Assembly (NCBI GenBank): GCA_000388065.2
Contig: KB932207.1
Direction: 5' to 3' (one strand)
DNA: 17,771 nucleotides
Source of the DNA: Fonticula alba ATCC 38817
Taxonomy: Eukaryota; Protista; Nucleariida
The translations under genes and the position numbers were made by a program. The notes under the pieces were generated by a model. It saw only the letters and a list, made by a program, of their open reading frames with translations, was not told where the DNA came from and did not search any database. This document shows, in pieces, positions 796 through 17,060 of this stretch (position 1 is the stretch's first letter; each line of letters starts with the position of its first letter).

Positions 796-3700
796 CCCCC
801 GTTCCCCCTCCATCCAGGCCCCCAGTTTGAGCACCCAGTCGCGGCCATCTCCTCGCACCAGCAGCTGACCTTCGTGGCTACCGGCAAGGATGTGGCTGTG
901 TGCGAGCGTGGTCGCGAGCGCCGCCGCCTCCAGGCCCACAAGGCCCCGGTGACCCAGCTGTGTGTCATCGGGTCCGGGGACTTCCTGGTGTCGGCCGACA
1001 CCAGCGGCACTGTCTGCGTGTGGGATCTCCTGAACATCCGCCAATTCCCCAACCAACCTGCCGGTGCGTGCTGGCGCCCTCTGCTTTTCCTTCCCCTGTG
1101 GGCCCCCACCACCGCGGCTCTTTTGTTGCTCCCCGGTCCGGGACTCACCTCTCCCCATCCGGCGGCGGGGGGCCTCCTCCCTTTGCACAGTCACCCCCCA
1201 TATGACCCTGGAAATGGGGGACACCTTCGTCCCGACGGCCCTGCTGCAGCCGAGCACCTACGTCAACAAGGTCCTGGTTTGCTCGGCGTCCGGCATCATG
1301 CAGCTGTGGAACGTCCGCTCCGGCAAGCAGATTTTCCAGTTTGCGCAGCTCCCGGCCTCCGTGGTGTCGGTGGTCCAGTCGCCCGTGCTCGACGTGATCG
1401 GCCTCGGCCTGTCCAATGGTTCGGTGCTCGTGCACAACCTCAAGCATGACAAGACTCTGATGACCTTCCGTGTGGATGGCCCGGTCCTGAGCCTGGCCTT
1501 CCGTAGTGGTGCGCCCTCGATCACCTGCCCTTGCCTCCCCTGGGCCCCCCTGACACTGATGCCCCATTCCTTCCCTCGCTTTTCCCTGTCTCTCTTCCTG
1601 CCGCATTTGCAGATGACGCCCCCATCCTGGCGGTCGGTGACCACCAGGGCCAGATCGCCACCTTTGATTTGGAGAAGCGTCGTCTGGTGAATGTGGCCCA
1701 CGCGGCCCATGAGGCCGGCGTGAGTGCGCTGCACTTCGTCGCCAACACCGGGGTCCTTCTGTCCTCCAGCGCGGACAACAGCATCTGTGCCTGGGTGTAT
1801 GACCAGCCGAACGGTCCCTCGCAGCTGCTGCGCTCGCGCTCCGGTCACAATGCCCCCCCGAACTTCATTCGGTGCGTCCATGCTCGAGGGGGGGGGGGGG
1901 GGGGGGCCGATTTCTTGCCACCCGCGTGCCCTGTGACCCCGCATGGCGGCAACGCCCAGCATCATGCTTGGCCCCTGCGTTTCTTTCCCCGCGCCTCTCT
2001 GACTGGTCCCTGTGTCCGCTTGGGTGTCGCCATGCCACGGCAGCTTCTATGGCGCCATCGACAGCATGTCCCTCGGGCATGTGTTGCTCTCTTCCGGCGC
2101 AGATCGCGCCCTCCGGCTGTTTTCTTTGATCCGCGACGCGCAGGCCGTCGAGTTCTCCCAGGGATCCCTGCGCGCGGTGGCCAACAAGCGCCACGTCACC
2201 ATGGCCTCCCTGCGCCTGCCGCCGGTTCTGCAATTCTCCTGGTGTACGACCACTCGCAGGGCCCCCTTTCCAAGATCGCCCCCGTCTCCCTCCTCCCACT
2301 AACAGGCGCACACGCCTGGCCCTGCTGTGCTCCTCCCTTGCGCCGCACTTTTGACAGCGGATGTGCGCGAGCGCGACTGGCATAACATCGCCACCTGCCA
2401 TGTCAACCACCCGACTGTCTACCTTTGGTGGACGGAGAAGCGTGCCCTGTCCGATGTGAAGATCCTCTCCAAGGATGGCTCCAATGCCAAGGTCCGTCAG
2501 CGCGCGTCCATCCGCATGCGATATTCCTCTTCTCCATCTCCCCCCCCCCCTTTTGTTCCCACCCCCCCCCCCCCCACCCCCCCCCCCACACCCCCAACCC
2601 CCACCCCCCCACCCACCCGCTCCCGCTCCCCCATGCCCCCTCCCCCATCGCGACCACAGAGCGTTTGCATTTCCTTCTGCGGCAACTATCTGGCTGTGGG
2701 TTACGAGTCTGGGCGCATCGACACCTTCAACGTCCAGTCCGGCTACCATCGGAGCACGTATCTCGGCCACAGCCTCAGCGTAACCGGGCTCTGCTTCGAT
2801 GCCACGGCTCGGTCGCTGGTCAGCTGCAGCCTCGACGGCACGGTCCAGGTGTGGCCCTTCCACACGTCGTTCGTCTCGTCGGCCGGTGCTGGCTCCAAGG
2901 TCACCAGCCTGCCGCTGAACCTGGACCCGGAGTCTGGCCCGGTCACCCGCATGATGATCCACCGGGAAAATGGCCTGCTGGCCGTGGTGACAGATGACTG
3001 CATGATTCGCCTGTTCGATTTGGAGACCCAGCGCCTGGGGCGTGTGTTCAGCGCCCAGGACTCGCCGGTGGTGGACATCGTGCGTGCCTGTGCATCTGCC
3101 TCGCCCTCTCTCCCTCCTTCCCTCTCGCCCCCATCTCTTGCCCTTTGTTCCTCTCCCCTTTTTTCTCTCGCTCCCCCTCTACGCCTGAAAAAAAAAAAAA
3201 GGCCCACCGGGAGGGCCGTGGCTCTCGGCCCCATCCGGCCCACATGTGCTGACCATGCGCACTCACATGCACGCACCACCACTCATCAAGGCCTTCTCCG
3301 TGGATGGGCGGTCTCTGCTGGCCGTCACCACGGATGCCCACCTGCGTGTGTATGACATCCCCTCCTCGCTAACGGTGGACACGATGAAGCTGCCGGCGGT
3401 GCCGACTTCCATCGCGGTGGCTCCCCGTGGGGACTTCATTGCCATCACCTTTGTCGACGACTTGGCGGTGTCGGTGTATGCCCTGGCCACGGGGATTGCC
3501 CAGGCGCGCGCCGCTGCCGCCGACTACGAGCGTGTCACCCTGGAGCGCACGCGCCTGGATGAGGGCATGGTCGACGGGGTGGTCACCCTGAGTATGGTCC
3601 CGCGCGCTCGCTGGCACAACCTCCTCCATTTGGATGCCATCCGCGAGCGCAACAAGCCGCTCGAGGCGCCCAAGCTGCCGGAGAAGGGTGCGTTGCCCAT

Positions 3701-4714
3701 CTGCGGCCGATCACGAGGGGGGGGGGGCGGGGAACTCCTCCCTCCGGGTGGAGACCATGTGCCCTATATGCTTTTGACTCGGCTCCCTTCTGACGCCTCC
3801 CACTCCCTCCCCTTTCTCGCCTCTCTTCGCCTCTGCTTTTGCCGGACTCGCGCCGGGATATAGCTCCCTTCTTCCTTCCTTCCAAGACCGCTGTCACCTC
3901 GACGCTGCTTTCCCGCCCCGGGGAGTCCATCGAGGAGGAGGAGGCCGCCCTCAAGGAGGCCTCCCGTGTCATGCGTATGGGCACCGCCGGCGCGGAGACC
4001 CCGCTCACATCGGCCCTGCGTCAGGCCTCCGAGGCCATTGCCGCCGATTCGGAGGTGGACACTTTCTGTGCGTCATTCACCTCCCCCCCTGCCCGGCAAG
4101 GAAGAATCCCGCCCGGGGCGCGGTGTACACATGCGTGCACTCGTCCCGGGCCTCGGGGCCTTTTTTTTCTGCTTGGTGTACCTGCTCACTTGCTTCAGCT
4201 CCTGCTGGTTGCTAACCGCGTGCTCATCCTGCACCTGCCTCCCGGGGCCGGGGGGGGGGGGGCGATTTCCCTGCGCACCTCCGCAGACACTGCGGCCCTT
4301 GAGCACTTGACGCGCCTGGCTCCGTCCGGTGTGGACTTTGAGATTCGCTCGCTCCGCTATGACCCGCCCAGCGGCACGGACCCTGCGGCCAACATTTTCG
4401 CCGCCAATCCCGCCCCGGCGACCGAGCTGGCTCGCTTTGTGGACTTCCTCACCTGGGCCACGCGCCGCCATCGGGACTTCGAGCTGGTGCAGGCCTGGAC
4501 CACGGTCACTCTGCGTATCCATGGGGACCGTCTGCTGCCGGGGGTTGAGGAGTCGGCCGAGGCCGGCGACGTGCCGGTCACCGCCCTGGACATGGATCTC
4601 ACCCGGCGCATGAACACCCTTCGCCGGGAGCAGTCCCAGGCCTGGTCGCGTCTGTCGGACTCCTACCGCGAGGCCATTTGCCTGGTGGACTTTGCCCGGC
4701 GCGCGGTTGTCTGA
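341..4714 (+). CDS. UTP21: U3 snoRNA-associated protein 21 / WDR36 (SSU processome UTP-B subunit), spliced; exons 341-502, 641-668, 818-1063, 1191-1508, 1613-1871, 2044-2243, 2358-2491, 2660-3079, 3291-3687, 3864-4067, 4287-4714 (2796 nt, 931 aa + stop)
   Basis: Exon peptides follow the Utp21/WDR36 family in order: LYEEFRKIGLVSD..FHIYD, STYVNKVLV..LWNVRSGK, SPVLDVIGLG, LLRSRSGHNAPP, ERDWHNIATCH, SVCISFCGNY, TLSMVPRARWHNLLHLDAIRERNKPLEAPK..APFFL, APSGVDFEIRSL, DFELVQAW. All ten introns are GT..AG with consistent phases, and the exon sum is divisible by 3 and ends at TGA 4712-4714. Start at ATG 341 is preferred; in-frame ATG 329 is an alternative if the UTR intron is not spliced. Confidence 0.95.
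757..791. repeat. Poly-C homopolymer (35 nt) in UTP21 intron 2
   Basis: Directly visible, lying between a CTGAC branch-like motif (~745) and the CAG acceptor at 817. Confidence 0.9.
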
Positions 4715-5685: not shown

Positions 5686-7474
5686 TTAGGCGATCTTCAG
5701 GCCAGCCATGGAGGACTCGATGGAGTTGATGGACCAGACGACCACCTTGCCATCGAGGCCGGAGGAGGCGAAGGCGGTGACGCGCGAGCCGGAAGACTCG
5801 TACGGCGACAGCTGGGTGATGGCGTTCTGGTGGACGGTCGGCAGGGAGGTGTCGGTCTCCTGCTGGCCGCGGGAGTCCAGCTGACGGAACATGTTCATGG
5901 CGGCCGAGGCACCGGAAGCCGGGCCGGCGGAAGAGGACTTCTTCTCGGTGGCATCCAGCGGACGGACGTAGGCCCACTGGCCATCATGGCCACGAGTGAA
6001 CAGGTGGATGTTGGCATCGTGGCCACCGGCGATGACGCTGTTGTCGGAGGCCCAAATGACGGAGCGCTGGGGCAGGCCATTGAAGTTGACGGTCTGCACG
6101 GTGGCCCCCTCGTCGCTGGTGACGAAGTGCACGCTGGAGCTGTGGGACACCCAGGCCAGGGTGTTGCCATCGGGCGAGAACTTGACCGAGTGGACCCAGC
6201 CACAGGCGCTGGTGCCGCAGGCACCGCGGAACTCATGGTAGCAAGTGTCGAAGGACAGCTTCGAGCCCCAGGGGGTGGGCTCCGGCCGGGCGGTCTCAAC
6301 CTCCTTGATGCCGGCGAAGAAGACGCGCACGGTGAAGTCCGCGCAGCCGGCCGCCACCAGCACCGAGTTCGGGTGCCAGTCCAGCGAGAGGATGGTCGAG
6401 CGGATGGGCTTCTTGATGTGACGGCAGGCCCACCAGTCGTGCTGCGGCTGGAAGTAGCAGATGGAGATGGTGCGCGCGCCGGAGGCAACGGCGATCTTGC
6501 GCTCATCCGGCGACCAGCGGACGCAGGTGGCCGCGCGGTTGATGCGCAGCAGCACCAGCTTCGGGCGCCAGGCCACACCATCCTCGAAGGACCAGACGTA
6601 GGCGTTGCGATCCTGCGAGCAGGTGACAATGCGGTTGGACTCCGGGGCCCAGTCGATGCCGGTCACCAGCTTGTCGTGCTCGGCCAGCACGAAGGCCGGA
6701 GCCGAGGTGTCCCAGTTGGCACCGTTGCGGCGGTAGATGAAGACCTTCTCGGAGTTGGCCGAGATGGCGATCACTGGCGGGGGNNNNNNNNNNNNNNNNN
6801 NNNNNNNNNNNNNNNNNNNNNNNNNNNNNNNNNNNNNNNNNNNNNNNNNNNNNNNNNNNNNNNNNNNNNNNNNNNNNNNNNNNNNNNNNNNNNNNNNNNN
6901 NNNNNNNNNNNNNNNNNNNNNNNNNNNNNNNNNNNNNNNNNNNNNNNNNNNNNNNNNNNNNNNNNNNNNNNNNNNNNNNNNNNNNNNNNNNNNNNNNNNN
7001 NNNNNNNNNNNNNNNNNNNNNNNNNNNNNNNNNNNNNNNNNNNNNNNNNNNNNNNNNNNNNNNNNNNNNNNNNNNNNNNNNNNNNNNNNNNNNNNNNNNN
7101 NNNNNNNNNNNNNNNNNNNNNNNNNNNNNNNNNNNNNNNNNNNNNNNNNNNNNNNNNNNNNNNNNNNNNNNNNNNNNNNNNNNNNNNNNNNNNNNNNNNN
7201 NNNNNNNNNNNNNNNNNNNNNNNNNNNNNNNNNNNNNNNNNNNNNNNNNNNNNNNNNNNNNNNNNNNNNNNNNNNNNNNNNNNNNNNNNNNNNNNNNNNN
7301 NNNNNNNNNNNNNNNNNNNNNNNNCGGGGGTGCGGGGGTGCGGGCGTGCGGGCGTGCGGGCGTGCGGGCGTGCGGGCGTGCGGGGAGGGGAGACGCACTG
7401 GTGCGATCCTTGTTGTAGGCGAAGCAGACAACCGGAGCCGGGGGGTTGACGAACTGCGTGATGGAGGTGCTCAT
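5686..7474 (-). CDS. ARPC1: Actin-related protein 2/3 complex subunit 1 (p40/p41, WD40); exons 7474-7399 and 6773-5686 (1164 nt, 387 aa + stop)
   Basis: The spliced product reads MSTSITQFVNPPAPVVCFAYNKDRT-M-IAISANSEKVFIY...EHDKLVTGIDWAPESNRIVTCSQDRNAYVW..WRPKLVLLRINRAATCVRWSP..ASGARTISICYF..DWWACRHIKKPIRSTILSLDWHPNSVLVAAG..TPWGSK, the ARPC1/Arc40 signature. Kozak GCCACCATG at 7474, GTGCGT donor at 7398, CAG acceptor ending 6774, phase 1 on both sides, TAA at 5688-5686. Confidence 0.97.
6784..7324. other. Scaffold gap (541 N) inside the ARPC1 intron
   Basis: Run of N flanked by a G-run and a (GCGGGCGT)n tandem repeat. Confidence 0.99.
7325..7382. repeat. 8-bp tandem repeat (GCGGGCGT)n at the 5' end of the ARPC1 intron
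   Basis: About 5 perfect plus 2 degenerate units running into the gap. Confidence 0.85.
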
Positions 7475-9700
7475 GGTGGCGATGTGTGCGTGTTTTGCGC
7501 GCGGGGCAGGAGGAGGTGGAACCAAAAACTACGCCGACGAACGCGTGTGATCGTGTCAGTTGGCCGACAGGCGGGCGGGGGAGAGGGGGGAGGGGGGAGG
7601 GGGGGGTGGAGCCGATGGGTGTAGGAGGGGCGCAAGCGGGGCAGGGCGGGGCGAGGAGAAAGGGAGGACGAGCGACGAGGCGACGGACCAGGAGAAGGGG
7701 ACTCTGGTCAGTCTACCCTGAAAATGGATTGTGCCCCCCAGGCCCGCGGCCGGGACGCCAGGGGCATGTCCCAGAAAAGTGCCCTTGAAGCAAGTGCCCC
7801 GAAGGGGACGCATCGCCCTGTGCCCTGCGCCCGTCCCGTCGTCCCCCCTCTCTCCTGCCGCGACCCCCCCCCCCCCCGCCCTGCCCCGCCCCCTCCCTCC
7901 TTGCCTTCGCTTGTGTGTCCGTCCCTGCGCCTGCCTCCTCTCGGGGTGGGCTGGTCGGGGAAAAAAACCCTGCCCCCCAGACACTCCGGGGAGGGACGCC
8001 CAAGAGGAGGGTGTGGTGAGAGAGAGAGAGAGAGACGCGCGAAAGGCACGAACCGGGCACAACGCCCGCCAAGGGCCGCCCAGGGCCGCCTGGCCGCTAC
8101 CGCAAATGGGTGAACAATGCTTCCTCATCATCACCCTCGCCCCCCCCCCCCCCCGTCTCCCCCACTGTTGATGGCCACCGGGGGGGGGGGGGGGGGGGGG
8201 GGGGCGAGAGGCCGGAGACGGGCAGTCAGGAAAAATAACAACCGCCGGAATGCGCACTCGGGAATGAGCGTCTGGAGGGAAAGCTCGAGCAACAGCAGAA
8301 TGATGCGACAGGAAATGGTGTTCCCTTCTGGGGCGTGATCCCGGCGGTGTGATACAAATATGCGCGCCTGGCCAATCACCGATGTCCAGCGGAAGCGCGT
8401 CGTCCGACACCCCACGGCTGTCCCCCCGAGAGGGAGAGGGAGGCGGGCCCCCCAGCGCCGGGGCGTGAGACAAAATTTCCCCCCACACGATCCCGGGCCT
8501 CGGCTCCGGGAAATCCCCCACCCCCTCCGGGGCCCTCCTTTGGCTGCCCGCATGCCTGCCTGCCGGGGAGGGGCAGGCGGCCGGAGCCCCGACCGCGCCC
8601 GCGCCCGCGCCCGCGCCCCCCTCCGCCAGCCGCCGCTGCCGCCGCCTCCCCTCCTCGGGCCCTGCCTGCGACCTCCGGCAGTCGCGCAGACGACCGGTGT
8701 GTAATTGCTTTCCTCAGGGGCCGGGGCGCCTCGGGGTGTGCACCTGGCCGGGGCGCGGTCATAGACGACGGTGGGAAGGGCAAGGGGAGGGGAGGGATTC
8801 GCCGCCGCGCTCAAGGCTGGAGCAGCCCGTACACACAAACGCCCGAGCCAGGGGGGGGGAGGGGGGGGGGGGGGGCATCAACAAAGGCGCCCCCGATGCG
8901 GGAGGTGCTTCGAACCCCATCTCGGTGGCCCGAGCCGCGCTGCGAGGGCGCAGGGGCGGCGCGGGGGCCGAGGCGCGGGGGAAGGCTTGGGTGGACGCGA
9001 TTGGCTTGCACACAAGACAGAGTCGGGGGACCGCGCCCGCGAATGGAAGCCGGCAGGCAGTCCCGGGGGCGGGGGGGGGGGGGGCGGGACCATCCCAGGG
9101 CAAGGAGGAATCCCCCCGGGGAATTCCCATTCAAATCAGCACCGCACAAACAGATCCTCCCAGGCGCGCGGAGGGCACACCAGGCAAAGCCCACCGGCCG
9201 GGCCACTTTACGCACCCCCCGATCGCCAGCAATGCGCCCCGCGCGGTGGGGCTATGTGTAACCAAGCAGGACGGCGGCCAAGAGGCCAGGTATGCATGCC
9301 ACGAAGGAGGTAGCGACAGCAGCAGCAACAGCGCCGGCGCCCCGGCGCCGGCGGCCGGAGGTCGCACAGCGAACGCAGCACACAGACCCCCGGGAGGGGC
9401 CGGGCGCAGGGCAGCCGGGCTTCTCTGGTGTTCTCCTGTGTGGCCTTTTTTTTTCCAGACGATGGAAGAAGGAACGCCATCAAGCATACGGAGATTCCAA
9501 AAATGGCGGGCACTAAAAATGCGGATTAAACTAGCCACCACATACAGGCACACATATCTAGAAGGGCGAGAAACGAGCGGCGCACATGCGCCGGCCCGCA
9601 CCCCCGCTCCCTCTCGCGCCCTGCGCTCGCCCCGTGCCCGGGCCGCCACTGGCAGATGCCGCACCGGAGGAAAATCATGAGTGGACATTCCACTGGGCTG

Positions 9701-9736: not shown

Positions 9737-11573
9737 CCCCCCCCCTCTCTCTGCCACTCTCTCTCCGCCCCGTTTTATGGGACTTGTTCCCTCGTGCGCC
9801 CTGCCCCACCCATGCCAATCGCGGGGCATGACAGTGCCGCGGCCGGGGCGGCTGCGGGAAAAGGGCAGCAGGCCCCCGCACGGCCGGACACGCGCACGCT
9901 CACCCACACCCACACATGCATTGTCGACAGATGATGTGCACCCGTCGCTTGGGCCCCGCCGTGGAGGGGGCGGGGGATGGTATAGAGGAGGGGCCGGGGG
10001 GGGGGGGGGGGATGTGCCTGGCGTCTCGTCGGTCAGCACCCTGCCGGATATTTTGTTTCATTTGGCGTCCAGCCAGCTCGGTGTGCGGGGATGGGTCGAT
10101 TTTAGGGGCGAGAGGGGCGACAAGAGGCGGTCGGGTCGGCTCGGCGCGGGAGCCCGGAGGCCCGGGGTGGTGGGGGCGCGCCGCGGGAAAACGAGGGACC
10201 AGGTCACACAGCGCAGGGGGCGTGCCCCTGCCAGTCTTTCGGGCGACCATCCCGACCCAGACGAAGGGGGGCCCGGAGGAAGAGCAGGAGGAGGAGGAGG
10301 AGGAGGAGGAGGGGGGGCATGTCAGTCGCCTAGATCGCCCTCCGCCCGGACCGTCTCCCTGGCCGAGAGTGCGGGAACGTCCCGGCCCCACGGCCGAGAG
10401 GGGAAATTGCAATCAAAATTCCAGTCCTCCTGGCGAGTCGCCAGGCTGCTCGCTGCGGGGAAGAGGCTGGGCAGGGGGCGTGGATGGGGTGAGGGGGGGG
10501 GGGATAGAGGACCCCCCCCCGCCCATCGCGTTCTGCTTCTTTGCGGCCCCGGTCGAGCGGGCGCCTTTTGCCTTCTCCCGAGCAGAGGGATGTGCTGGAA
10601 TTCCCGGCTTGTCACCTGGAACGCCCCCAAGCGGGGGCCCCGGGGTTTGTCTATTCGCCCGAGTGGCCATCTCTCGGACCAAGAGCACTCGCCGTCGCGA
10701 TCGGGCTCGTTCCCCTCGCCGGGAAGATGCTTCCGGAGCCGGCAGACCCGGCGAGAGCCGGGATCCCTCCGGACGGGGAGGAACATGGCTCGTACTCGCT
10801 CACCGGTGTCGTCCCCCGCCGGCTCTTTTCGCCACTGCCTCCAGCTGCGATGCATGGATGCATGCATCCCTGCGTGCGTGCGTGCGTGCACAAACATCCA
10901 TATGCGCTCCTATGCGCCCTCGTTGCCACGGGCCCGCCGGGCCGGCATGAGGGCCGACCGGAGCCCGGCTGTCCACCGGCCCCGGTCAACGTCCTCCCCC
11001 CGTCCGTGCTCCCCCTCGGCAACTCCGGGTGGCGGGCTTCGCCAACCTGTGCCTGTTGCCCTGTGTGCTTTCCTCGGTGTCCGGCTCAAGGGACTTGCGA
11101 CCTTCTGCACAAGGGAGACACGCCTCGGGGTCGGGGCCCGGCGCGGGGCAGCCAACGCCGGCCGACTCCGCTCCCGGCCCCCGGAAATGGAATGTCCAAG
11201 AGGATCTCCCCGAGCTTCCTGTTGAATTGGCCTGATGTACGTCGCCGCCGTCCTGCACGGCCAGGACACCTCCGCAGGTCAGGGGGGCGCGCCGCCACAG
11301 GCACCGGCAAATCTCCCGACGCGACATACGCTCGCCCTCAGGGGCAACACCGGTGCCGGGGTTGGTGCCCGGCCGGCTGGTGCGCCGCCCGGCAGCGAGC
11401 ACCTCCCCCGGGGACGCGGAGTCCGACGGCCGAGGCGGTCAGGCACGCCTCCGGGGAGGATGGGCACAAGCGATCGCCAGTGCGCCGCCGCCCCTCCCCC
11501 CCCCCCCAGGGGAGCTGACCCCTCGCCCCCTCGCCCTCTGGGTGCCGTGCTCTCCCCCCCCCCTCCTCGTAGG

Positions 11574-11581
11574 TATATAAA
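11574..11581 (+). promoter_or_regulatory. TATA box (TATATAAA) of the thymosin-like gene
   Basis: Canonical TATA in very GC-rich surroundings, about 100 nt upstream of the GTATGT donor at 11679, leaving room for a short first exon. Confidence 0.7.
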
Positions 11582-11678
11582 GGAGGCCCTTCGGCGTATC
11601 CGAGAGAAGGGGAGACAACGAAGTTGTTTCCTGAATAATTTCCTTGCACCTTCCCCTCCCCCCTCCTCCTCCTAGCCA

Positions 11679-11833
11679 GTATGTCCCGAGCCTTTCCTTC
11701 ACCGCGCGGCCCTGCCTACCCCCCACCCCCCCCCTCTCTCTCTCTTTCGCCCCCGGCCTGGTCTCTCTGCCTTCCGCCATCGACACCATCACTCACCCAT
11801 GTGCCCCCCCCCCCCCCCCGCCCCCGCCTCCAG
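11679..11833 (+). other. 5'UTR intron of the thymosin-like gene (155 nt)
   Basis: GTATGT donor, ACTCAC branch-like motif (~11791), poly-C tract and CAG acceptor. Splicing joins ..GCCA to CC-ATG and creates a perfect GCCACCATG Kozak context. Confidence 0.75.
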
Positions 11834-11835
11834 CC

Positions 11836-11988
11836 ATGTCCGACAAGCCCGCCACCAACCAGCCCCTCCTCAACGAGATCAACGCCGGCAGCGCCAAGGG
11901 CGGTCTCCGCAAGACCTCCACTGCCGAGAAGGTCTGGAAGCCCTCTGCTGACGACCTGGCCACCGACAAGAAGGAGAACGCCAACTAA
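11836..11988 (+). CDS. 50-aa WH2/beta-thymosin-like actin-monomer-binding microprotein (MSDKPATNQPLLNEINAGSAKGGLRKTSTAEKVWKPSADDLATDKKENAN)
   Basis: N-terminal MSDKP as in thymosin beta-4, amphipathic helix LLNEI, LRKT (LKKT-type motif), then T.EK..PS..L..DK paralleling TETQEKNPLPSKETIEQEK. No A-ending sense codon among 50 codons, plus a TATA box, UTR intron and Kozak context. Confidence 0.85.
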   Translation: MSDKPATNQPLLNEINAGSAKGGLRKTSTAEKVWKPSADDLATDKKENAN

Positions 11989-13840
11989 AGGCCTTCGCCA
12001 TGTCTTCGTCGAGGGCCGGCGTCGTCTCCCTCGCACGGGGTGACACCCCTCGCGGCTTCGGTGGTGTGTGGGCCCTTTCATCGGGGCCCGCCCGCCGCCT
12101 CGCTCGCCACCGGGTATCATGCCCCCTGTGGGAGGGAACGCGCATCCTCGCCTCCACCGCGTGCGCTCTGTGACTGTGCGACTTGCTCCATCCTCCTCCT
12201 CCTCCTCCTCCTCCTTCTCCCTTGCGCTCGTGTGTACACATGTGTGCAGCCCTGTCTCCCTCCCTCCTCCCACACGGGTGTCTAGTTTGCCCCGCGTGGT
12301 AGTGGGTGGTGATGGGGGGCGGGGGTGGGACCGAGAGAGAGAGAGGGATGCGCAAGTCTGCCGCGCGTGGCTGCCATGAGCGCCGGGACGCACGGACCAT
12401 CATGCATGTGCCTGCCTATGTGCTTGTGTATGCGTGCGTCCGTGTCCGGCGCTCACCGGTGCCACGCCTCTCCTCCACCACCCTCCGGCAGCCTGTCAAT
12501 GACGAGGAAGATGCCAGCGCCATCCCCCCCCCTCCGTAGAGAACTCCTCACTGGTTTGATGGAGCCATCACGAGGTGCTGCCATGTCCCCCCCCCTCTTT
12601 GTCCTCCACAGAGCCGCTGGCCGTGTAGGGGAGAGTGTGCCTTGCCTGCACACTCAGTCATGCACCGATCCTGTATAATACAATACCCCGCTTCAGTCTT
12701 TGCTTTGTCTCTTTTCTTCCTGGCACGGGGGAGACGCAGATTCGGCGCGCCTCACAAAAGACCTCCTTCGCGCATCTCCCGGGAGCTGGTCTGGTACCAA
12801 ATGCGTGCCGGCCAGTCGGAAGGGGAGGGGGGGAGGGGGGCGTGTCCGAGGAGAGGGAGCCACGAATGCGACAATGGGACGCCTGCTGCTGGGCGCTGGG
12901 GCGGCCAAAGGGAAAACCAGGTCATGGGGGGAGGGCGAGCGACAAGCAGTGTCTTCCTGACAAGAGGCAGCATTTTCGGGCTGCGCACTGGGCAGAAACC
13001 CGGCCGAAGGTATTCGACACTGCGCATGCCTGACCCCCCCCCCCCCCCCCCCCCCCCCCCGGCAGGTATGGAGGCGCACAGGGGACCTTGGGGGCGGGGC
13101 GGGGAATATATTTGGCAATCGCCGGTCCAGGCTACGAAAGCAAGAGCGCCATTTTCCCCGTCATGAGCCGGGATCCGATTCCCCCCCCAGTCCCACGGGA
13201 AAAGCCAGAACAGCGGCCCCTGTTCTTTCCTCGTTCGCTGGTCCGATCTCGCCCGGGCCATTTTTCGACCCCACAGGTCTGGCCCCGGGAATGTGCAGGT
13301 CTAGCGCGATCGAGGAGGCATTTTTGACATCCGGCCTGTCCGCACGTGATGCAGCAACACACCCGCGGCTTCAGAACTGCCGGGCTGACGGTCTGGCAGC
13401 TGCGATCTGGACCGGGTCTCGACCGTGGTGCCTCGCACCGAGCACGCACGCCCCCGCCCCGCCGCCACCGGCATTCCCTTTCTTCCCGCCTCTCGCAGGA
13501 GTGTGGGACAAGCACTGGGCGGGGGGGGGGGGGGGGGGGGGGACGGCCTGGCAGCCTGGTGGCTGAAGCGTGCGTGAGACTGGCGTATCTTGCTTTTGTT
13601 TTCGGCCCCCAAGCCCCCTGGCGGGACGCCTCGGGGCATCGAATGCCCCTCCCGTCCCGCGGGACTATCGGTTCGCGGGCCGTCCTGGTCACAGCCGCGG
13701 CATGTGGGGGGAACATGCCGCGCGCGAAACCCCCTCCAGAGTGGTGTGCGCGGCTGGCGAATGGGGGCGAGCCCGGTGGAAAGAGTGTTACGCCCAGTGG
13801 CGGAGCCATTCCGTGGCAGCTGCCTCCGCCCTCCGCCCCC

Positions 13841-14676: not shown

Positions 14677-16907
14677 TTACTCCTCGCGCAGGGGAATGTA
14701 GAAGACCGAGGCCTTGGCGAAGCCGTTGAACTCCGACGCGGCGGTCAGGGTGTAGGCACCCATGTTGCGGAAGGCCAGCCAGTCACCGATGGACAGGCGC
14801 GGCAGGCGGGTCTCCGGCACGATGAGGTCAATCGAGTCGCAGGTGGGGCCCCAAACACTGCAAGTGTGCAGCAGGTCGCCATCGACCTCGCCCTCGGGGG
14901 TGACCGACCGGGTGTCGGCCTGGCTGTTGTCGGCGGCGCTGCTGATGGCATCCAGCGCATGGGACAGGGCCGCCTGGTCGAAGGTCCCGAGGCAGGGCTC
15001 GCCCGAGCGGCGCAGGACCGCCGGGATGACCCGCGCATGGTCGAACTGGATGCAGTTGAAGGACCCATACACGCCGTCATTGACGTAGTACATGAACTGG
15101 TCACCGGGCTGCACGTCGGTGTTGTCATCGGCCGGGAAGGAGAGCACCGGCGGGCCGACCACGAACTCGGTGGAGCCCGTGGGGGAGGCACCACCCGGGG
15201 AGGGGGTGGCGATGCCGGCGGCACGGCGTGCCTCGCGCGCCGCCTCGGCAATGGCCTCGAAGTCGTAGGCAGCCCCGCTGTCGGCGGCCGCCAGGCCGGT
15301 GGTCAGGGCAGCGGTGGTGGCCGCCGCATCGTCGGCACCCTCATCGGAGCCCGGGACGGCCGGGATGCGCCGGCGGCTGGTGACATTGACCGCCAGGCTG
15401 AAGGCCGGCGCGGCGAAAAAGCGCCCCGGCTCGCCGATGAACCGGACCCCGGGCGGGAACCGGGCCAGCTCCGGGCGCAGGGCAGCGGCCACCTCATGGA
15501 AGGGAGCGCCATCGACATTGTCGACGCCGGGGAAGCCGCCACCAATGTCAACCAGCTCCAGCTGGGGCATGCCCAGGGCCGCGGCCTCGGCGAAAACCCG
15601 ACCAACACGGCGGACCGCATACGTGTGCTCTTCCGATCTAACCGGACCCCGGGCGGGAACCGGGCCAGCTCCGGGCGCAGGGCAGCGGCCACCTCATGGA
15701 AGGGAGCGCCATCGACATTGTCGACGCCGGGGAAGCCGCCACCAATGTCAACCAGCTCCAGCTGGGGCATGCCCAGGGCCGCGGCCTCGGCGAAAACCCG
15801 ACCAACACGGCGGACCGCATCGGCGAAGCTCTCGGGATCGAAGCAGCCCGAGCCCACATGGAAGGAGACACCGACCACGCGGACGCCCAGGGCCTGAGCA
15901 CGGGCCAGGAGAGCGCGAGTGGTGTGGGGATGGGCGCCGAACTTGCGCCCGAAGGCGCAAACGGACTTGCTGTCGTCGGCCAGGATGCGCAGAACGGCCC
16001 GGACCCCGGGGTGCTCCTGGCGCATCTTGCGCAGCTCCTCCGCATTGTCGAAGGTCATGAGGTCCACGCCGACGGCCGCCGACTGGCGAATGTGCGACGC
16101 CGGCTTGGTGGGGTTGGCATAGATGATGCGCTCCGGGGCCACGCCGAGGGCCAGCACCGAGCGGATCTCACTGATGCTGGCGCAGTCGAAGGAGGCCCCG
16201 AGATCGGCCAGGGAGATCGGAAGAGCGTCGTGCATCTTGCGCAGCTCCTCCGCATTGTCGAAGGTCATGAGGTCCACGCCGACGGCCGCCGACTGGCGAA
16301 TGTGCGACGCCGGCTTGGTGGGGTTGGCATAGATGATGCGCTCCGGGGCCACGCCGAGGGCCAGCACCGAGCGGATCTCACTGATGCTGGCGCAGTCGAA
16401 GGAGGCCCCGAGATCGGCCAGGGTCTGCATGAGGCGCGGGTCCGGGCAGCACTTGATGGCATAGTGGGGGACAACGTCCGGGAGCTCCCGGCGCCAGAGG
16501 GCCAGCCGCTCGCGGACCACATTCAGGTCGCACACGAAGAAGGGCAGGGCATCGGGATTGGCCTCAGGGCTGGACAGGGCCTCCAGCACCGAGGGGATGG
16601 TGGCACCCTGAGCGCGGCAGACCGCCGCCGCGGCCCGGGAGAGGGTCCCGTCGTCGGCGGGTGCGGCGCCGGCCTGGGCGGCCGTCTGGGCCGCCAGCGC
16701 GACCGCCTGGTCGCAGCAGGCGGCCGCACCGGCCTCGGTAGTGGTGTCAGGCTTCTCCGAAGCGCAGGCGGCGACGGAGAGCGCCCCGGCGCCGGAGGCC
16801 GCCTTGTGGGGGCAGCCACCGGCCATGGTGCCGGGGAGTCCGCAGGTGGAGAGGGCCTTCTGCTCGGGAGACATGGGCGGGGAGGGCATGGGCTGGCTGG
16901 TCTGCAT
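14677..16907 (-). CDS. ODC1: Ornithine decarboxylase (fold-type III PLP enzyme). Intronless CDS, 606 aa after removing two artefactual insertions (200 nt and 210 nt)
   Basis: Motifs PHYAIKC (PLP lysine, codon 16454-16452), FDCASISEI, RIIYANPTK, MTFDNAEELRK, KFGA, VGVSFHVGSG, DIGGGFPG, EPGRFF, YYVNDGVYGSFNC, WGPTCDSID (catalytic Cys), WLAFRNMGAYT and FNGF. 2231-200-210=1821 nt = 607 codons ending TAA 14679-14677. The exact start Met (16907 vs downstream in-frame Mets) is uncertain. Confidence 0.95.
15440..15820. repeat. Exact tandem duplication, 181 bp (15440-15620 and 15640-15820), separated by a 19-nt adapter fragment; artefact
   Basis: The copies look identical with period 200 nt, which shifts the ODC frame. 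Confidence 0.95.
15621..15639 (+). other. Illumina TruSeq adapter fragment ACGTGTGCTCTTCCGATCT
   Basis: Exact match to the 3' end of GTGACTGGAGTTCAGACGTGTGCTCTTCCGATCT. It translates as DRKSTR in the minus-strand ORF. Confidence 0.97.
16022..16423. repeat. Exact tandem duplication, 192 bp (16022-16213 and 16232-16423), separated by an adapter fragment; artefact
   Basis: The copies look identical with period 210 nt (in frame), giving a spurious 70-aa repeat in the ODC translation. Confidence 0.95.
16214..16232 (+). other. Illumina TruSeq adapter fragment AGATCGGAAGAGCGTCGTG
   Basis: Exact match to the start of AGATCGGAAGAGCGTCGTGTAGGGAAAGAGTGT. It translates as HDALPIS in the minus-strand ORF. 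Confidence 0.97.
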
Positions 16908-16943
16908 GACAGGGAGCAAACTGGAGCCGAGCTGGGTGACTGT

Positions 16944-17060
16944 CTGTGTGTGTGTGCGGGGGGGGGGGGGGGTCAGGGCTGAGAAGGGGCCATCGGAGGC
17001 GGGCAAGGGGAGGGGGGAGGAAGCACGGCGGGGCGCGCCGTCGGCCCTTCGGGCACGCAC
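16944..17060 (-). other. Putative 5'UTR intron of ODC (117 nt; alternative acceptor 4 nt downstream at 16940)
   Basis: AG|GTGCGT donor at 17060, CTGAC branch motif 16976-16972, poly-C/(CA)n tract, CAG acceptor ending 16944. Confidence 0.65.

Follow-up and report, generated by a model that had tools for sequence, protein, structure and literature searches.

A gene for a 50-residue peptide with beta-thymosin and WH2 features was found in Fonticula alba, a slime-mould-like crawling amoeba that belongs to the nucleariids, within the Holomycota (the fungal side of the Opisthokonta). The gene is spliced and transcribed, and the resemblance of its predicted product, MSDKPATNQPLLNEINAGSAKGGLRKTSTAEKVWKPSADDLATDKKENAN, to beta-thymosin repeats was shown at the sequence level to exceed chance. 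The best explanation, to which we assign a probability of about three in four, is that the product is a divergent single-repeat beta-thymosin/WH2 peptide that would bind G-actin 1:1. Actin binding is predicted from the family relationship and from a modelled complex with the actin of the same organism.

The gene, its transcript, and its annotation

The window analyzed here is the whole stretch of 17,771 nt (C7:963972-981742 of assembly G000), and genome searches covered 31.3 Mb in 214 contigs. An earlier note, made from the letters of the window, had proposed a non-animal host, possibly a nucleariid. This placement was correct: F. alba is a nucleariid, and the actin encoded in the searched genome is identical to XP_009496373.1 (KCV68802.1; "actin, cytoplasmic 1"). 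The actin gene is intronless and resides on the same contig as the window. The stand-alone ORF described in the earlier note was recovered at exactly the same coordinates (Table 1), and consists of 50 codons (MSDKP...KKENAN) followed by TAA. A genome search revealed that it is single-copy, with no second copy within the ORF or elsewhere in the F. alba genome.

Three other genes were recognized in the window, encoding UTP21/WDR36, the ARPC1 (p41) subunit of the Arp2/3 complex, and ornithine decarboxylase, the last in two pieces. ARPC1 lies in an island of low GC content (0.48-0.52 at 6001-8000, compared with 0.62-0.72 elsewhere). Upstream, its frame remains open for another 217 codons that lack an ARPC1 match; on the opposite strand, an open frame extends over 617 aa.

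Table 1. Features of the peptide gene and of its neighbours, in window coordinates.
Feature	Position	Strand	Basis
UTP21/WDR36, flanking gene	2327-4714	+	
ARPC1 (p41 subunit, Arp2/3 complex)	5686-7431	-	Frame residues 218-579 match PDB 6yw7_C, E 4e-108
Candidate TATA box, TATATAAA	11574-11581	+	Sequence reading; ~65-70 nt upstream of the first RNA-contig base
Exon 1, 5′UTR only, as far as contigs reach	11645-11678	+	X1, X2, and X3 contigs start at 11643-11649 and run to the donor
5′UTR intron, 155 nt, GTATGT...CCTCCAG; its polypyrimidine tract is a long C-run	11679-11833	+	Skipped by contigs of three runs
Exon 2: 2-nt leader, CDS, and ~700-nt 3′UTR	11834-12690	+	Contigs cover 11837-12690
CDS of the 50-aa beta-thymosin/WH2-like peptide, stop included	11836-11988	+	ORF, family matches, codon usage, shuffle test
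Predicted WH2-type amphipathic helix QPLLNEINA, residues 9-17	11860-11886	+	Pfam WH2 alignment, residues 10-30
LKKT-type motif LRKT, residues 24-27	11905-11916	+	Counterpart of LKKT/LKNA in alignments to thymosin beta-4 and Ciboulot
Beta-thymosin-type C-terminal half STAEKVWKPSADDLATDK, residues 28-45	11917-11970	+	Pfam Thymosin alignment, residues 21-46; hhalign; common to P0019
Ornithine decarboxylase, flanking gene, two pieces	14677-17060	-	

Transcript evidence was drawn from four runs on two samples of one 2012 study, each represented by ~11-12 Mb of contigs. The libraries are presumed to be RNA, because their contigs carry a spliced junction. Over positions 11300-12700, the X1, X2, and X3 contigs aligned from 11643, 11645, or 11649 to 11681, and resumed at 11837. 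The 11681 end carries two to three mismatches, where the contig letters CCA (11834-11836) were set on genomic GTA (11679-11681). This pattern is the one expected for a junction 11678|11834, and therefore defines the 155-nt intron; the evidence consists of contigs from three of the runs, on two samples of the one study, with the junction deduced from the mismatches. The spliced leader reads ...TAGCCA|CCATGTCC, which gives the start context GCCACCATG, exactly as anticipated in the earlier note, where a 5′UTR intron whose removal yields this context had been proposed. The TATA box claimed in the same place was read directly from the sequence, and is listed in Table 1 as a candidate. No ATG occurs in the sequence between the TATA box and the donor (11678), so that the AUG of the ORF is the first in the mRNA. 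The true start of exon 1 is probably further upstream than the contigs reach. Word depth over exon 2 is uniform, at about 2500-3200, out to ~12690, and contig cover stops just past ATAATACAATA at 12674-12685.

Long C-runs and CCT/CT repeats are found in the promoter, leader, intron, and 3′UTR (11480-11570, 11650-11675, 11795-11830, and 12195-12225, respectively), where they break RNA contigs and draw in unrelated ones. Contigs of ~1730 nt that matched 11650-11673 and 11726-11745, with 802 letters between the two matches, were rejected as CT-rich repeat matches from elsewhere.

The expectation that so small a gene would be missed by annotation was not borne out. It is already present as H696_04418 ("hypothetical protein"; KCV68998.1 / XP_009496569.1 / A0A058Z519), unnamed and mis-modelled at 99 aa; residues 50-99 of the annotated protein were identical to the 50-aa peptide in the exhaustive phmmer search described below. 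The precomputed Pfam annotation lists no domain for the 99-aa protein, and the exact 50-aa sequence is absent from a 15-billion-protein collection. In the annotated model, join(11235..11379, 11834..11988), the first 49 residues come from an ORF that starts at 11235 and is spliced at 11379 to the acceptor 11834, and the thymosin-like part would form the C-terminal half of the real product. This model is present in GenBank, RefSeq, UniProt, and EukProt, and its acceptor is identical to that used by the contigs. However, RNA-contig depth over 11300-11628 is zero in all four runs, compared with the depth seen on exon 2, and the junction carried by contigs of three runs is 11678|11834. The 49 additional residues abound in Gly, Ala, Pro, and Arg, as is typical of GC-rich non-coding frames, and with them included the Pfam Thymosin score drops to 15.5 bits, from 17.5 bits for the 50-aa form. 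We consider it very improbable that the 99-aa protein is the real product; a rare 99-aa isoform is possible, since contigs show presence rather than absence.

Codon usage was scored by the codon adaptation index (CAI), for which the F. alba actin gene supplied the weights. The 50-aa ORF has a CAI of 0.77, a GC3 of 0.90, and C-ending codons at 63% of positions. Its codon usage is the most actin-like among the window's 121 ATG-initiated ORFs of 40 aa or longer, in keeping with the extreme codon bias that had been claimed, and high expression, claimed alongside, is suggested by this bias and by the contig word depth on exon 2. The ORF that follows it on this transcript (12000-12173) has a CAI of 0.31, and the other ORFs on the transcript do not exceed this value. 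We infer that the 50-aa ORF is translated. These signals bear on the possibility that the resemblance to beta-thymosins arose by chance or convergence, either in a short ORF carried by an abundant RNA that is non-coding or codes for something else, or in a peptide whose role is unrelated. In favour of this reading, the peptide is short and of low complexity, and its CDS occupies 153 nt of a ~900-nt or longer transcript. Its start at the first AUG, in the Kozak-type context GCCACCAUG, and the best codon adaptation in the window argue against such an origin, as do the similarity tests that follow.

Resemblance to beta-thymosins and WH2 domains

The earlier note had described the peptide as WH2-like in its N-terminal half and thymosin-like in its C-terminal half, and had pointed to the corresponding Pfam families as a check. 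The peptide matches WH2 (PF02205) over residues 10-30 (14.5 bits, E 0.03), and Thymosin (PF01290) over residues 21-46, which fall on profile positions 13-38 of 39 (17.5 bits, E 0.0034). The two halves are thus placed as described, at scores that do not reach the curated gathering cut-offs of 23.1 and 24.8 bits, respectively, and these sub-threshold values leave some room for a chance resemblance. The WH2 pattern of an LLxxI-type amphipathic helix, a linker, and LKK[TV] is found as PLLNEINAG-SAKGG-LRKT. Compared with the LKKTET-type motif and tail of beta-thymosins, LRKTSTAEKVWKPSADDLATDK retains the L, the basic pair, both T residues, the EK and the P, the two acidic residues, the aliphatic position, and D-K, and departs from it in having S in place of E, A in place of Q/E, V in place of N, and K in place of a conserved L. 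The PROSITE family pattern for beta-thymosins would presumably not match LRKTSTAEKVWKPSADDLATDK. The alignments define a repeat signature that consists of the helix, a G, and [LM][KR]x[TA]xTxE[KR]xxxPxxx[DE][IL]xx[DE][KR].

An exhaustive phmmer search, in which every one of 1.84 billion cluster representatives was compared, returned four proteins at E ≤1e-3. These were the annotated F. alba protein itself, a multi-repeat beta-thymosin of the prawn Penaeus japonicus in which the PF01290 repeat occurs six times (E 2.6e-4), a eukaryotic protein of 74 aa from a metagenome, designated P0019 (E 8.5e-4), which has TAEKVWKP[ST]ADDL in common with the peptide, and a 1784-aa fn3-repeat protein, P0017 (E 1.7e-5), which was rejected as an artefact of nine summed repeats. 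A two-sequence profile built from the peptide and P0019 was aligned by hhalign to the six prawn repeats over 28 columns (E 3.1e-5, probability 73%). A beta-thymosin-repeat HMM built from the same six repeats gave the peptide 17.7 bits, and none of 20,000 composition-preserving shuffles reached this score, the best being 10.9 bits. BLASTP with a 43-aa fish thymosin beta-4 produced an end-to-end alignment at 32% identity that includes MSDKP. The nearest named clusters by language-model features were PF01290 clusters (0.89), a result used as a lead only.

Comparison with solved structures led to the same families. The best match of the single sequence was domain 1 of Ciboulot on actin (3u9z_C, E 0.034, query 3-47 versus chain 10-53), and the third was a gelsolin/Cobl-WH2/thymosin-beta-4 chimera (3tu5_B). 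When the two-sequence profile was used, the Cobl/thymosin-beta-4 chimera was matched with an E of 4.6e-4, and Ciboulot with an E of 0.0067. With Ciboulot domain 1 and an engineered Cobl-WH2/thymosin-beta-4 chimera as the top structures, the term "WH2/thymosin hybrid", used in the earlier note, is a fitting description of the peptide. Significant similarity to undisputed beta-thymosins was found by phmmer, hhalign, the shuffle test, and the PDB matches. The shuffle result, the whole-length similarity to several independent beta-thymosins, and the retention of the same C-terminal half in a second eukaryote (P0019) all argue against a chance resemblance, which we regard as improbable. Short actin-binding motifs can, nevertheless, have a convergent origin.

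The single-repeat beta-thymosins of animals (thymosin beta-4, beta-10, and the fish and echinoderm proteins; PF01290) are, like the F. alba peptide, stand-alone proteins of ~40-50 aa that start with MSDKP; the F. alba product has 50 residues from the first AUG of the spliced mRNA to the TAA. An LKKT-type motif (LRKT in F. alba), followed by T-x-EK-x-x-x-P-x-x-[DE]-x-[IL]-x-x-[DE]-K, is common to both, and KTSTAEK is identical in the salmon thymosin beta-a-like protein. The F. alba peptide differs from the animal proteins in having six more residues between MSDKP and the LKKT motif, a WH2-type LLNEI helix with a Gly-rich linker, and W-K in place of the conserved x-L before the Pro; it also scores below the Pfam cut-off, and its host is a nucleariid of the Holomycota. 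With the repeats of Drosophila Ciboulot and of the Penaeus protein (LOC122248830), it has the core L[KR]xxSTxEK[VI]xxP[ST]A[DE]D[LV]Ax[DE]K in common; these proteins contain three to six repeats, whereas the F. alba peptide contains one, with one additional linker residue. In the 3tu5 chimera, the spacing from the helix to LRKT equals that of the F. alba peptide, and is likewise followed by a thymosin-type tail, but the chimera is artificial. Natural WH2 domains occur within large proteins, and lack a pointed-face tail.

P0019 is the sole relative of the peptide's subfamily that was found. It is 46% identical to the F. alba peptide, and G-L-[KR]-x-T-x-TAEKVWKP[ST]ADDL-x-x-DK is common to both, whereas P0019 has 26 additional N-terminal residues and a different helix (KVEYAVKSG). 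Its own Pfam Thymosin match is also sub-threshold (E 0.013). P0019 is encoded on a 3.6-kb contig of the JGI metagenome 3300059473, which is assigned to a eukaryote because the neighbouring genes encode zf-CW and FYRC domains.

Predicted complex with actin and mode of action

The peptide was folded with F. alba actin, giving an ipSAE of 0.82 in three runs, compared with 0.03 for the best of three controls. Among solved complexes, 51 of 78 attained this mark, as did 2 of 108 mismatched pairs, in a calibration that peptides fall outside of. Contacts agreed among runs at a level of at least 94%, and the pLDDT of the partner was at least 80. The structure prediction with actin that the earlier note had envisaged is favourable on its face, although the high score may reflect memory of solved WH2/thymosin-actin structures. 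The model is best taken as a measure of likeness to beta-thymosin/actin complexes rather than as proof of binding.

In the model, the peptide contacts actin residues 23-32, 143-148, 167-168, and 337-355, and also 55-63, 93, 201-211, and 242-245. The N-terminal helix is positioned in the barbed-face cleft, where L11, L12, and I15 touch actin 143-148 and 345-352, and L24, R25, and K26 touch actin 23-25 and 344. The remaining interface residues of the peptide reach residue 48, and contact subdomains 2 and 4 (actin 55-63, 93, 201-211, and 242-245), with low expected error for residues up to 48. These contacts are those of the thymosin beta-4 pose on actin. The proposal that the C-terminal helix caps the pointed face of actin agrees with this model, in which the C-terminal half extends to subdomains 2 and 4.

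A mechanism can be outlined from the family and the model. H696_04418 would truly encode a 50-residue, intrinsically disordered, single-repeat peptide that binds one actin monomer. Residues ~9-17 would form an amphipathic helix and fill the barbed-face hydrophobic cleft that lies between actin subdomains 1 and 3, LRKT (24-27) would latch to the acidic patch near actin residues 23-25, and the STAEKVWKPSADDLATDK tail would extend up the monomer to subdomains 2 and 4 (pointed face), such that both faces would be masked. The peptide would then hold part of the abundant actin as an unpolymerised reserve, from which profilin could draw. In animal cells, G-actin is buffered mainly by thymosin beta-4. 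A profilin gene with two exons is present in the F. alba genome (G000:C8:339905-340505), and an exchange between thymosin and profilin is therefore possible.

A different outcome, which is itself a sub-case of the best explanation, is that the peptide binds G-actin but acts like profilin. The C-terminal half would then be weak or dynamic on the pointed face, the complex would add to barbed ends, and only pointed-end growth would be blocked, as with Ciboulot domain 1 and actobindin. The top single-sequence structure match, to Ciboulot domain 1 rather than to thymosin beta-4, points in this direction, as do the WH2-like N-terminal half and its LLNEI helix with a long Gly-rich linker, as in Cobl. 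Ciboulot acts in a profilin-like mode (PMC2879411), and small differences in the linker and C-terminus are described as switching function within the beta-thymosin/WH2 family (Hertzog et al. 2004, as cited in PMC3459087). The profilin-like reading remains plausible because the outcome in this family hinges on subtle linker and tail dynamics. In the model, however, residues up to 48 are placed on subdomains 2 and 4, as in thymosin beta-4, although a static model is blind to dynamics. Taken as a separate reading, profilin-like action is somewhat unlikely. When the two modes are set side by side, a barbed-end-competent complex is about as plausible as sequestration with both faces masked, with a slight preference for sequestration, given the thymosin-like tail and its docking in the model.

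Distribution and possible origin

Word-indexed protein searches gave no candidates for the peptide alone, and nothing beyond the gene itself and P0019 for the two-sequence profile. A profile that included the prawn repeats returned 92 matches; all of the named ones are animal, and the unnamed short matches that were inspected are animal-type MSDKPD... exons with intron read-through. No named non-animal beta-thymosin was found in the protein searches, an absence that the word filter and length window make weak. A scan of metagenome contigs produced 494 pattern matches, none of which was confirmed by tblastn. Scans of the F. alba genome with the Pfam Thymosin and WH2 models gave nothing useful; the Thymosin blank is uninformative, as the control for that model was also matchless. 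In the ESM Atlas, PF01290 accounts for 52% of one cluster of 53-aa proteins, for which the few taxa on record are Nucleocytoviricota; this cluster may represent thymosin-like peptides in giant viruses. A literature search of limited coverage revealed no paper that links thymosin with Fonticula or choanoflagellates, and no paper that names H696_04418. Within the same limited coverage, papers combining thymosin and "opisthokont" do not discuss the distribution of beta-thymosins.

Acanthamoeba actobindin is counted among the proteins built from beta-thymosin repeats (Hertzog et al. 2002, as cited in PMC3459087), which places repeats of this type outside animals, and the kind of protein found here is therefore already known. 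The actobindins of Acanthamoeba and Dictyostelium are, like the F. alba peptide, small non-animal (Amorphea) G-actin binders with beta-thymosin/WH2-type repeats. By description, they consist of two tandem repeats in ~88 aa, whereas the F. alba peptide has one repeat in 50 aa and falls outside the actobindin family so defined. A pre-metazoan origin had been inferred in the earlier note on the condition of a protist host. The host is such a protist; the idea is less new than supposed, given the class assignment of actobindin. What is new here is a single-repeat, MSDKP-starting, and apparently abundant member in Holomycota, together with a corrected gene model. Within the searches run, the F. alba peptide is apparently the first single-repeat beta-thymosin-like peptide found in Holomycota.

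One scenario, which we put forward tentatively and at less than even odds, is that the animal-fungal ancestor possessed an abundant G-actin buffer that resembled thymosin beta-4 and started with MSDKP, and that this buffer was kept by nucleariids and animals and lost by walled fungi. The Fonticula peptide would then be a natural WH2/thymosin intermediate that links the two families by descent. If this ancestral reading is true, single-repeat beta-thymosins would be no animal invention. The finding corrects the model of H696_04418 in public databases, and shows that micro-proteins of this kind escape family thresholds. It also adds a data point on the relationship between beta-thymosins and WH2 domains. 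How non-animal crawling cells keep a large unpolymerised actin pool is less clear than in animals, and the F. alba peptide offers a cheap synthetic model for whether thymosin-type actin sequestration predates animals.
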